From Calcarisporiella thermophila CBS 279.70 (taxonomy: Eukaryota > Fungi > Calcarisporiellomycota), in contig NW_027192192.1 in assembly GCF_041956535.1 (NCBI RefSeq), positions 685,796 to 749,795 on the forward strand: a DNA stretch of 64,000 nucleotides. Reading direction: 5' to 3'. Within the stretch, counting starts at the first letter, position 1; the number at the start of each line of letters is the position of its first letter. Position numbers and translations under genes: made by a program. The notes under the pieces were generated by a model. That model did not search any database. It was not told the DNA's origin and saw only the letters and a program-made list of their open reading frames with translations. Below are positions 45,951 through 49,762 of the stretch, one piece after another.

Positions 45951-47725
45951 CTACATAGCCTCCTCCTCTTGGTCAAACCCAGGCTGTCCCCCCTCGCCCT
46001 CCTCCAAGTACACCTCCTCCCCCCCCTCCACCTCCCCCTCGTACTCCTCTTCTGCGGATGCGTCCTGGTATTGCTGGTACTCCGAGACGAGGTCGTTCAT
46101 GTTCGACTCGGACTCGGTGAATTCCTAGAATGCACAATATAAAAGACCCAATCGGTTAGGACGGAATAAGAATCCGATTCGGGCGCCCCCCTACCATCTC
46201 GTCCATGCCTTCGCCCGTGTACCAGTGCAAGAAGGCCTTGCGTCGGAACATGGCGGTGAACTGTTCGTGGACCCGCCGGAACAGCTCCTGGATGGCGGTG
46301 GAATTGCCGACAAAGGTGCCGGCCATCGGCAGGCCCACCGGCGGGATGTTGCAGTGCACGGTCTGAACGCTGTTGGGGATCCACTCCACGAAATAGCTGG
46401 CGTTTTTGGTCTGGACGTTCAGCATGTGCTCCTCCACCTCCTTGGTGGACATTTCGCCGCGGAAGACGGCGGCACACGTGAGATAGCGGCCGTGGCGCGG
46501 GTCGGAGGCCGCCATCATGTTCTTGGCGTCGAACATCTGCTGGGTCAGCTCGGGAACGGAGACGCTGCGGTACTCGCTGTGGGCCGCGGCGGTGAGGGGC
46601 GCAAAGCCCACCATGAAAAAGTGGAGCCGCGGGAAGGGCACCATGTTGACGCACAGCTTGCGGAGGTCAGCGTTGAGTTGGCCCGGGAAGCGGAGCGAGG
46701 TGGACACCCCCGACATGACGTTCGAGACCAGGTTGTTGAGGTCGGCGTAGGAGGGGTTGGCAAGCTTCAGGGTGCGGAAGCAGATGTCGTAGAGGGCCTC
46801 GTTGTCGATGCAGAAGGTGGCGTCGCAGTGCTCGACCAGCTGGTCCACCGAGAGCACGGCGTTGTAGGGCTCGACGACGGTGTCGGAGACCTTGGGGGAG
46901 GGCACGACGGAAAAGGTGCAGAGCATGCGATCGGGATACTCCTCTTTGATCTTCGAGAGCAGCAGCGACCCCAGCCCGGATCCCGTCCCGCCCCCCAGCG
47001 AGTGGCACACCTGGAATCCGGTCAGGCAATCGGTCTGCTCCGCCTCCCGCCGCAGCACATCGAGGATGTTCTCGACGAGCTCGGCCCCCTCCGTGTAATA
47101 CCCCTTGGCCCAGTTGTTGCCGGCGCCGGACTGCCCGTACACGAAGTTGTCGGGGCGGAAGAGCCTGCCAAAAGCGCCGGCACGAATCGAATCCATGGTG
47201 CCTGGAGGACAGGGACGAATTCAGTATGCCCCCTACTGCGTGAGGAGAACACAGCCGAAATGCGCAATGGAGAGAAAGAGAGGGCTCACCTGGTTCGAGA
47301 TCCACAAGAACCGCGCGAGGCACATATCGCCCTCCCGCCACCTCGTGGTAGTAGACATTGGCGCGCTCTATCTGCGAAGCGTCCTTGCCAGAATAACATC
47401 CCGTCTCGTCTATCCCATGCTCTTGGCATATCACCTCCCAGAACCGGTGTCCGATCTAGGGGGTGTAAGGGGGGGGAACACAGGTTAAACAAGGCTACAC
47501 GGGAACGAAACAGAGGGCTCCCGTCTCTCTTCCTATCCAGAGAGCTGGGCGGCTCGAATGCATTTACCTGATTACCACATTGCCCTTTATATTTTCAGGG
47601 GGGAAGGAAGAGGGGGAAAAAAATTCCATAGAAGCATGAAATCGGTAAGCGTGCGTCTCAAAGGCGCGCATTGAATTCTGGACATGTCTCCACCTACCAG
47701 TTTGAACATGAATGATTTCCCTCAT
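45951..47725 (-). CDS. TUB2: Beta-tubulin, divergent paralog; 5 exons including a 17-nt exon
   Basis: [69 protein letters not shown] and an acidic tail. Confidence 0.97.
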
Positions 47726-48139
47726 GGTATTTTCGAATGCGAATCGCAAAGAAAAATGAAAATAGATGTAATGCCAGAGCTGAATTCTTGTCACTTTTTA
47801 AATATGAAACGCGACGGGCGACCATGTTGAATATGCAAGCGAAACGCGGATGATTTCCCTCCCCCAAATTTCCCTTAATATGGTCATAGTCTATCCTTTT
47901 ACCAAACGGTTTCAGTCGTTTCTACACAAACCAAATCTTTTTCTAGGTTGGTACCGCCCCCCTGCCGCCCTGGCCAGTCCATCTTCTTTGGGTGTCTGAA
48001 TCGATGCTTAGTATTTGTAGGAAATAGGAAGGCGAACCCAAAATTTAATAAAAACTATATTTCCTTCATAGGCCCCGGGCGGGGAAGAGCTAGTTTAGAT
48101 TATTCCTGATTTTATCACAGCAGAGTATGTGTGGAATGC

Positions 48140-48440
48140 TAGTTTATTAGATGGGAAGGAAACAAGAGATCATGACATTGTTAAGGAACCGAGATTAGGG
48201 CACCCGCCGGATGTCCTAATGCAGGAGAGAAGTTAGCCTTGATTCGCGATCAAACCAAAGACAGAGGTCATAAAACAATAAGGATCAGTGGTGTTGTGTT
48301 GCGTATAATAAGTTTCTCTTTCATGAAGCAATCAGACAGCTCCAATAGAATCATCATCAAATCCCTAATAAAATTATACAAAAGAAAGGAAAAGGGCGTG
48401 AGACTTACCGGAGGTCTAGAGAAGAGGATCCGCGAGAGGA
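48140..48440 (-). ncRNA. Putative non-coding snoRNA host transcript with a 193-nt intron (48216-48408); ends approximate
   Basis: Donor G|GTAAGT at 48408, branch GCTAAC at 48232-48237, acceptor TAG at 48216 and AATAAA at 48143-48148; no credible spliced ORF. Confidence 0.7.
48282..48364 (-). ncRNA. Box C/D snoRNA (intronic), predicted guide for 18S rRNA 2'-O-methylation
   Basis: Minus strand reads GGAU-uug-AUGAUGA (box C)..CUAUUGGAGCUG-U-CUGA (guide + D')..AUGAAAG (C'-like)..CUGA-UCC (box D + terminal stem). The guide is complementary to conserved 18S CAGCUCCAAUAG. Confidence 0.88.
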
Positions 48441-48699
48441 GATTTAAAATACCATGTTCAATGTAAATAAAGTGCAAAAGCGAAAAAAAAAAAGAATTAC
48501 AAGAGATGTGCAAACAAGAGAGGGTTGGGGGGGGGGGGAGGGATTATTTATCCTAGTGGCTTTGTGTGCAAAATCCAACGCGAAAATTAACGCGTCGAAT
48601 TATGGGATATCCAGCCGCCTTCAACAGTGCTTCCAAGGGACGGAAAACATACAACCCCGAATGTGTGTAGGTTTCCCAGCCCAAAAGCGTCCCTTCCGC

Positions 48700-49762
48700 T
48701 CAATGGGTCGAAGCGGGCGGGCGCCACTCGCCCTCTATCCCAGCATCCTTCGGCCCGGTCGACAGCGGTCGTCGTTTTAGACGTGCCAGCACCTGTGCTG
48801 CCACATTCTTATACGTCCCCTTGTTACTTTTCTCGAGGATGCTCTTTTCTTGCCGAAGGGCGTCCTTTGCGGCTAGTCCCGCATCCTGCTCTAACAGCGG
48901 AGCATAGATCCTATTGAATTCTTTGAAGAGCAGGTTCAAGATATTCTGGCGAATGGTTCGGGCGGTGTGGGCGTTGATGTCTGGGGGAACCAGGGGAGGT
49001 TCGGAGGGAGCTGGGGCGGCGGGGGTATGAGCAACGCGGCGATGGGTGGGCGGGAGGAGGTCGGGTTTGGGCAGAGGCGTGTCCTTTTTTTGAGGAACAA
49101 ACTCCGGCTCCTAGCGTTCAACAGAGCAGGTCAAGTTAAAGCGGGGGTGTTTTTTCACAAGAAAGGCCAGGTGGGCATCGAGATTACCTCCTGGTGATAG
49201 GCAACTCGTTTCTGAGCGGGAGGTAAAATGTCCTGGATTTTTGGGGACACTCTCGGGGCGGCGATGGGAATGCTATTGGGCGGTGGTTGCGAGCTCTGTG
49301 GCCGGGGCGTTGGCGCGCTCGGATCGCTGCTCTCTTTGGGCTTTTTGGACATGGGGGCTAGAGGAGATGGATGAATCATTTTGGTGAGTTCCGAAAGAGG
49401 GGGAGGAGCATCCATCGATGCAATACCATCCACGGCTCGCTTTGGGAGAGCAGGCTGAGCTGGCTTTGCGTTCTCCGCCTGTTTTTCCGCGGCCTGGGTG
49501 CGCTGTCGTTTCGCGGCATGCTGCTGGATGGTCTGCCTCTCATGGGTCTCCGGGGCTACTGGGATGGAGAGCGATGGCATTAGTGGGGCAGATCGAGGAG
49601 GATGCATGGCCATCCATTCTGAGGGAGCGGGTTCATACAAGCCTTCTTCCGGGTCACGAGGGTGGGCAGCTCATGGGAAAAGAGGCACCATTGATCGCGC
49701 CCGCATCGATCTTTTCCGTAAGGGCACGGCAGGCCCTTGAAGAGGCCTGTCGCCGCAAACAT
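48700..49762 (-). CDS. Protein resembling the N-terminal half of Rex3/REXO1 RNA exonucleases (CCCH finger + helical domain), no nuclease domain; 3 exons
   Basis: MFAATGLFKGLPCP..C..CLFSH; spliced ..HTARTIRQNILNLLFKEFNRIY..ALRQEKSI..YKNVAAQVLARLKRR; stop at 48700. Confidence 0.65.

Follow-up and report, generated by a model that had tools for sequence, protein, structure and literature searches.

Calcarisporiella thermophila is an early-diverging fungus, which is placed in a phylum of its own, Calcarisporiellomycota, outside Dikarya. In the 64-kb stretch of its genome that was analysed in this work (referred to below as the window), a Rex3-like gene, the putative host gene of a small nucleolar RNA (snoRNA) and a gene for beta-tubulin are arranged in tandem on the minus strand. 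The putative host consists of two short exons separated by a predicted spliceosomal intron, and within this intron there very probably lies a box C/D snoRNA, which carries a guide sequence for 18S rRNA upstream of its D' box. The coordinates of all of these features are listed in Table 1. An earlier note on this DNA had described a minus-strand intron of 193 nt with the signals GTAAGT, GCTAAC and TAG, and inside it a box C, a D' box, a C'-like box, a box D and a terminal stem GGAU/AUCC, and every one of these elements was found again at the positions given for it.

Table 1. Features of the snoRNA locus and its putative host transcript, in the numbering of the window.
Feature	Positions	Strand	Basis or remark
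Putative host exon 1	48409..48505	minus	5' end estimated from the TATA-like ATAAATAA at 48551-48544
Spliceosomal intron (predicted)	48216..48408 (193 nt)	minus	5' splice site GTAAGT at 48408-48403, read from the sequence
Box C/D snoRNA (probable) of about 83-86 nt, corresponding to N. crassa CD30	about 48281..48366	minus	Boxes and match to profile R1
Box C, AUGAUGA, overlapping UGAUGAUGA	48351..48357	minus	Sequence reading
D' guide CUAUUGGAGCUG	48337..48348	minus	12 Watson-Crick pairs with own 18S 586-597
Box D', CUGA	48332..48335	minus	Sequence reading
Degenerate box C', UGAAAGA, 8 nt past D'	48317..48323	minus	Sequence reading
Extra base-pairing element (putative)	48301..48314	minus	Complementarity to 18S and conservation
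Box D, CUGA, 28 nt past C'	48285..48288	minus	Sequence reading
Intron branch motif GCTAAC	48237-48232 (branch A 48233)	minus	Read from the sequence
Intron 3' splice site TAG	48218-48216	minus	Read from the sequence
Putative host exon 2	48130..48215	minus	AATAAA at 48148-48143; 3' end estimated

The RNA encoded within the intron shows the features by which box C/D snoRNAs are recognized, viz. an RUGAUGA box near its 5' end, a CUGA box near its 3' end and a short terminal stem, together with an antisense element of at least 10 nt right upstream of D or D', whose target is at the fifth pair. RNAs of this class are generally stable, about 70-120 nt in length and bound by Snu13, Nop56, Nop58 and fibrillarin. 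The terminal stem is made up of 4 bp (GGAU/AUCC) and it includes the last A of box D, an alternative to this stem being AGGG/UCCU with one G-U pair. The spacer between box C and box D' is 15 nt long, and its last 13 nt are CUAUUGGAGCUGU. In the homologs of this RNA that are described below, box D' is either CUGA, CUGU or CUGG, and the place aligned with C' is occupied by UGAUGA, UGACGA, UGAGGA, UGAAGA or UGAAAAGA (alignment A1). The UGAUGA which is invariant in this alignment is so by construction, as it formed a part of the pattern that was used for retrieving the homologs.

When the 64-kb window was scanned for the combined occurrence of a box C, a box D, a terminal stem and an rRNA complement of at least 11 nt next to D or D', the snoRNA was the single locus found, and no locus of this kind was seen in 100 shuffles preserving the local composition. 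The search of the whole window against Rfam 15 revealed nothing at the gathering thresholds, and the same result was obtained for 20 representative homolog loci. With permissive thresholds, weak matches at the class level only (SNORD11, 19.7 bits, and snR61, 17.3 bits) were observed in the region 47800-48900. Rfam had been named in the earlier note as the place where a family already known for the target site could come to light; no such family was recovered for the snoRNA, for which the matches were at the level of the class and below threshold.

The guide CUAUUGGAGCUG is a perfect 12-bp complement to positions 586-597 of the 18S rRNA of this same genome, the rDNA of which was located by pattern on contig C53 (18S at C53:9718-11524). 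One unpaired U, at position 48336, stands between the guide and box D'. Counting upstream from D', the fifth nucleotide is thus G48340, which pairs with C589 of the 18S rRNA; with this one unpaired U before D', the D'+5 rule therefore picks C589 in the numbering of this organism. The next-best matches of the D' guide in the rRNA are of 10-11 bp, and they contain G-U pairs or mismatches. The register that had been proposed earlier, in which the guide selects the C in CCAG[C]UCC of 18S, is in this way borne out by the genome's own rDNA. Based on the sequence register and on the yeast numbering, we take C589 to be the position of C587 in S. cerevisiae. Methylation is predicted for this cytidine, which sits in the 3' strand of helix 18, right after the equivalent of the 530-loop. 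In the literature that was consulted, no organism was found for which 2'-O-methylation of this cytidine has been proven by experiment; for the 18S rRNA of Chaetomium thermophilum, 33 Nm sites have been mapped by RiboMethSeq (PMC12723226).

Two other observations were made on the rDNA contig (G000:C53). A gene for 5S rRNA (62.6 bits) is present on the minus strand at L003:8771-8889, in the spacer between the rDNA units, so that this fungus has its 5S rRNA gene linked to the rDNA repeat, on the opposite strand. In addition, 8740 N are contained in the contig, and one full copy of the LSU alone is readable in it (L002:101-3592).

The 12 nt before box D, AACACAACACCA, have no convincing target in the rRNA, the best match being one of 8 bp to the 25S rRNA, which was rejected as the target of a D guide. 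This spacer varies among the homologs, and its lack of conservation argues against any conserved D target. Upstream of the spacer lies the sequence UAUACGC (48307-48301), which is the exact complement of 18S 597-603 (GCGUAUA), viz. of the segment which adjoins the guide duplex on its 3' side and has one base (G597) in common with it. Additionally, AACUU (48314-48310) can pair with AAGUU at 18S 607-611. The tetranucleotide ACGC, mostly in the form of UACGC, is present 3-15 nt upstream of box D in 36 of the 45 distinct homologs, and the sequences flanking it vary. For the pairing of the C'-to-D region with the downstream segment of 18S rRNA, the mean energy in the homologs was -14.5 kcal/mol, as compared to -7.3 kcal/mol for shuffles, and a value of -13.6 kcal/mol (z -2.8) was obtained for the window. 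UAUACGC is separated from box D by 12 nt of spacer that lack both complementarity and conservation, and hence this element cannot itself direct methylation. Van Nues et al. (2011) have described conserved elements in snoRNAs which pair with the rRNA beside the methylation site and raise methylation up to five-fold in yeast, and this extra base-pairing sometimes overlaps the guide duplex by 1-2 nt (PMC3116282). UAUACGC matches these elements; it is well supported as an accessory pairing element that would provide 'extra base-pairing' for the D' guide, and it may have a stimulating role.

Homologs of this snoRNA were identified by scanning metagenome contigs for an exact pattern consisting of box C, 1-9 nt, the guide core UAUUGGAGCUGU and CUG. 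This box C/guide/D' pattern matched 56 environmental loci, which represent 45 distinct sequences belonging to several sequence groups, and most of these loci run on into C', UACGC and box D, all of which lie outside the retrieval pattern. One subgroup of the homologs, in which D' is CUGU, an internal hairpin is present and C' is a perfect UGAUGA, has the architecture of the N. crassa snoRNA CD30. A profile (R1) was built from 31 of the environmental homologs with the window left out, and its sole match in the window is at 48284-48360 (model positions 7-81), with a score of 37.5 bits and an E value of 8.4e-11. In the 28-Mb genome as a whole, the snoRNA locus was the single strong match to this profile, the next ones scoring about 18 bits. 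Since it was the window that supplied the retrieval pattern, there is partial circularity in the guide half of this match; its 3' half is independent, as C', UACGC and D are outside that pattern. The similarity within the family thus extends beyond the guide, and the span matched by R1 takes in C', UACGC and box D. With respect to synteny, no match to tubulin or to the Rex3-like gene was found in any of the 56 environmental loci.

Among the individual environmental loci, the homolog at L039:1766-1855 (+) is, by eye, the closest to the window snoRNA, and both have the box C flank GAUGAUUUCUAU, a D' box that is followed by UUUCUUCA, and AAAUUUUAUACGCAACA. At L054:5863-6374 (+), and also in L027, three tandem copies of a GC-rich variant are located about 240 nt apart. 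In this variant the D' guide is unchanged and the 3' half is a differing one (UUCAACGCUGU followed by CUGA), with one copy being without a recognisable box D. The tandem copies have the appearance of a eukaryotic snoRNA cluster, which would be polycistronic or repeated.

Turning to the intron, box D and the branch A are 52 nt apart in the window, in accordance with the distance of about 50 nt to the branch point which had been estimated previously. In the homologs, the branch was called as the first CTRAY motif that is then followed by YAG, and among the 34 entries where such a call could be made (the window included, with its 52 nt), a branch-like motif is present 44-63 nt past box D in 26. 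Further, in many homologs a consensus 5' splice site is seen 32-63 nt upstream of box C. Thus the window contains splice signals as well as the 52-nt spacing, and this spacing recurs among the homologs, although the splicing itself is a prediction. The recurring intronic layout supports a production of the snoRNA that would be coupled to splicing, though CD30 of N. crassa is annotated as intergenic.

When the putative exons are read separately, the sole ATG of exon 1 (at 48455) opens a frame of 3 codons (48455-48444), and exon 2 has ATG frames of 2 codons and 8 codons. Downstream, the ATG of beta-tubulin is at 47724, and this gene has a TATTTAAAAA of its own at about 47803-47794, i.e. approximately 70-80 nt upstream of the ATG; due to this box, the tubulin gene appears to have a promoter separate from that of the snoRNA host. 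The first intron of this beta-tubulin paralog begins at about 47696 on the minus strand, and an exact-sequence look-up of the beta-tubulin protein gave no record; the tubulin exon next to the snoRNA locus shows 100% identity to a C. thermophila protein. In view of the exons with frames of only 3, 2 and 8 codons, and of the TATA box belonging to tubulin itself, the host looks like a separate short non-coding transcript, and a dedicated non-coding host transcript is therefore plausible as a reading of this sequence. A run of 14 C on the minus strand (G on the plus strand) occupies 48524-48538, past the TATA-like motif and ahead of the putative host start, and the motifs ACGCGT and TTTCGCG are found at about 48565-48595.

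The earlier note had further claimed that the guide points to a possibly unreported 18S methylation site and to a modification that is lineage-specific, and neither of these claims can be upheld. For the snoRNA CD30 of N. crassa, 84 nt in length, Liu et al. (2009) list a D' guide whose match to the target 18S-Cm584 is 12/0 (PMC2780460 Table 1). Cloning from cDNA and a northern blot both revealed this RNA ('C, N' in that table), it is listed as intergenic ('IR', GenBank EU780954), and its target 18S-Cm584 is a prediction made in that work (PMC2780460). Its sequence is UGAUGA-UCUUUU-UAUUGGAGCUGU-CUGU..UGAUGA-CAAACUUUUACAUCGC..CUGA (PMC2780460 supplement), and the guide core UAUUGGAGCUGU as well as its fixed register are identical in the window and in CD30, as expected for members of one family. 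The snR77 row of the same table equates U575 of N. crassa with U578 of yeast, an offset of 3 (Table 1, PMC2780460), and accordingly C584 of N. crassa corresponds to the position of C587 in S. cerevisiae. With 18S-Cm584 in print since 2009 together with a guide for it in N. crassa, the site is neither unreported nor lineage-specific; its prediction had already been made for a guide of identical core and register, and the guide is found in N. crassa as well as in the 56 environmental contigs. The statement in the note that no known yeast or human site is at this position has proved correct, as Table 1 of that work has '-' for counterparts of CD30 in S. cerevisiae and human, and also in S. pombe and Arabidopsis (PMC2780460).

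Judged by its sequence, the window snoRNA adds a member to the CD30 family, in a phylum for which we found no published record of this family. A full-text search of the literature with the guide sequence led only to papers on 18S PCR primers, and a paper on the small RNAs of Trichophyton rubrum has no entry matching the snoRNA. Judging by the naming scheme of Liu et al., CD30 is presumably the family CD_30 of Canzler et al. 2018. In the accessible part of the text of that paper on the fungal snoRNAome, the label 'CD30' is absent (PMC5824354).

Based on these results, we consider it highly probable that the window RNA is a single-copy, intron-encoded box C/D snoRNA and the counterpart of N. crassa CD30. 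The sequences display its motifs, its complementarity to the genome's own rRNA, its membership in the family and, among the homologs, an intronic layout and two pairing elements that are conserved. Its expression, splicing, methylating activity and the stimulation of the latter by the extra pairing are what these features lead us to infer, and they would take the following course. A short transcript lacking a meaningful reading frame would undergo splicing, the 193-nt lariat would be debranched, and exonucleases would trim it down to a snoRNP formed on the C/D kink-turn; an assembly coupled to splicing would agree with the spacing of 52 nt between box D and the branch point. The D' guide would then form a 12-bp duplex with 18S 586-597, and fibrillarin (Nop1) at the C'/D' side would methylate the 2'-OH of C589 (presumably the S. 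cerevisiae C587 position). At the same time, UAUACGC, situated in what is usually the D-guide region, would pair with seven bases of 18S rRNA 3' of the guide duplex and stabilise the docking. As this element is 12 nt from box D, it would act as a docking aid and not as a second guide for methylation.

Other explanations for these observations also need to be considered. If the snoRNA is real and its biogenesis is different, then it could derive from an intron in the 3' UTR of the Rex3-like gene, which is upstream, or in the 5' UTR of beta-tubulin, where either UTR would be a long one, or from an independent transcript that is not spliced. The arrangement of the three genes in tandem on the minus strand is compatible with such an origin, and so is the listing of N. 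crassa CD30 as intergenic (PMC2780460). However, GTAAGT, GCTAAC and TAG follow one another in the correct order and the 52-nt spacing recurs in most homologs, while the two short exons have a TATA-like motif upstream and AATAAA downstream, and tubulin has a TATA box of its own about 70-80 nt before its ATG; we therefore view a different biogenesis as unlikely, although it carries more weight than any of the other alternatives. It is considerably less probable that the RNA serves mainly as a chaperone for the folding or processing of the helix 18 region and leaves little or no methyl group there. The two elements together cover about 19 nt of continuous 18S rRNA, the C' box is degenerate, and in the literature that we found methylation at the C589 position is not demonstrated, all of which would agree with a chaperone. 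However, the register is fixed in all homologs (one unpaired U, and 11-12 bp right before D'), and a guide register that is so strictly fixed is a signature of selection on the D'+5 geometry, beyond mere pairing. Likewise, C' boxes with insertions have been documented, and in yeast divergence of the C' box is compatible with activity (PMC3116282).

That the guide directs a previously unreported 18S methylation peculiar to the lineage of this organism is very improbable in light of the identical guide and of 18S-Cm584 published for N. crassa in 2009, where the identical register argues against a mismatch of numbering, and of the occurrence of the guide in 56 environmental contigs from several distinct sequence groups. 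What could be cited for it is the lack of a known homolog in S. cerevisiae, S. pombe, Arabidopsis or human (PMC2780460) and of a matching Rfam family. Lastly, each of the boxes is short and the Rfam scores are below threshold, as would also be the case if short motifs had come together by chance, and without function, in an AT-rich intron. However, no such assembly was seen in the 100 shuffles, a profile made from other organisms matches the locus with an E value of 8.4e-11, and the 3' half is conserved though it lies outside the retrieval pattern, and hence a chance origin has hardly any credibility.

A further question concerns the origin of the accessory element. The G of AAUAG in 18S rRNA is the human Gm644, for which SNORD54 is the guide. 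The heptamer UAUACGC of the window pairs with the identical 18S bases (GCGUAUA) as does U54, or SNORD54 (Rfam snoU54, RF01277, clan CL00008); however, 12 nt separate the heptamer from box D in the window, and the two RNAs have unrelated 5' halves. In U54, the D guide UAUACGCUAUU is right upstream of box D and the G of AAUAG is at D+5. This arrangement is absent in the window, where the heptamer, due to its distance of 12 nt from box D, cannot place the G of AAUAG at D+5, and the Rfam model of snoU54 has no match in the window at E values up to 10. In the environmental loci L006, L019, L032 and L035, the element is present in guide register as GUAUACGCUAUU followed by CUGA, which would put the G of AAUAG at D+5, and this sequence recurs as the 3' half of the snoU54 consensus (at 19.7 bits and E 0.075, which is below threshold). 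The RNA at L006:3188-3264(-), identical in sequence in the other three loci, belongs to short CD30-type snoRNAs with a core of about 64 nt. RNAs of this type are putative double guides, in which the targets of D' (the C587 position) and of D (the U54 site) would overlap on one stretch of rRNA.

In the genome of C. thermophila, no separate U54-like gene was found by searches with the pattern and with RF01277. The matches to the U54 pattern were rejected for want of a box C, and two among them appear to be in coding sequence; the RF01277 matches in the genome were below the cut-off and were likewise rejected, bacterial control genomes having also given matches below the cut-off. Two identical 15-mers, ATACGCTGTTTCTGA, are located 2.2 kb apart on the minus strand (L067 and L068; G000:C23:573757-573771 and 575941-575955). 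They were rejected as snoRNAs, as they are apparently coding sequence, by eye possibly the signature region of an ABC transporter.

It is conceivable, but in our judgement doubtful, that the CD30-type snoRNA is a fungal descendant of an ancient U54 guide, in most lineages of which the D guide was turned into a helper; as the target in the rRNA dictates the sequence, homology with U54 and convergence upon it are inseparable. If such a descent has taken place, then the L006-type members would still be double guides, with D' for the C587 position and D for the G595 position (the U54 site). In most lineages, Calcarisporiella included, the D guide would have lost its function through insertions that separate UAUACGC from box D, and it would have been kept as accessory pairing for the D' guide, as the outcome of a 'guide-to-helper' conversion. 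Given that the family is also present in Calcarisporiellomycota, the guide for the C587 position would then be older than the divergence between Dikarya and the zygomycete-grade lineages.

The results presented here provide a sound annotation of a probable snoRNA at a spot of the genome where the search for RNA families finds nothing, and they indicate that a CD30-type guide for the cytidine right 3' of the 530-loop equivalent of 18S rRNA exists outside Dikarya. On account of its guide being present there, the predicted modification is probably an old one that is widespread among fungi, and not a local invention. As methylation at this position has seemingly never been demonstrated, the family marks a concrete and testable rRNA site near the decoding region. 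The second pairing element, which is strongly conserved, offers what may be a clean natural example of extra base-pairing and, in some homologs, a possible case of a methylation guide becoming a helper element. The understanding of snoRNAs in general is unchanged by this work, and its value lies in annotation and comparison.

Among other known systems, the snoRNA snR77 / SNORD65 (HBII-135) guides the methylation of 18S Um578 in yeast and Um627 in human, 9 nt upstream of the target of the window RNA. It resembles the latter in having a D' guide and in being intronic in N. crassa (Nc CD24, PMC2780460); however, its guide and its nucleotide are different ones, and its sequence is unrelated to that of the window RNA. 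The snoRNAs of yeast and human with extra base-pairing (snR75, snR76, snR70, U24 and others; PMC3116282) are similar to the window RNA in that a conserved complement to rRNA, which is not a guide, pairs beside the methylation duplex, and the overlap of the window element with the duplex by one base falls within the 1-2 nt described for them (PMC3116282). These are, however, other snoRNAs with other targets, and stimulation in the CD30 family is suggested by analogy with them. The closest relationship is with CD30 of N. crassa, with which the window RNA was compared by eye only. The two RNAs are of similar length (84 nt in CD30 and about 83-86 nt in the window), and they share the core UAUUGGAGCUGU of the D' guide, a single unpaired U in front of D' and a 12-bp match, as well as an element of the AAACUU...ACGC type past C', while neither has a conserved D guide. 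In contrast, CD30 has CUGU as its D' box, a hairpin between D' and C' and a perfect C' box (UGAUGA), whereas the window RNA has CUGA, no hairpin and a degenerate C' box, and in CD30 the accessory motif has diverged to ACAUCGC and is accompanied by a U-rich spacer. The N. crassa RNA is further annotated as intergenic and the window copy is intronic, and their hosts belong to Ascomycota and Calcarisporiellomycota, respectively; however, the predicted target cytidine, viz. C584 in N. crassa and C589 in C. thermophila, both corresponding to what we take to be the yeast C587 position, is common to both.
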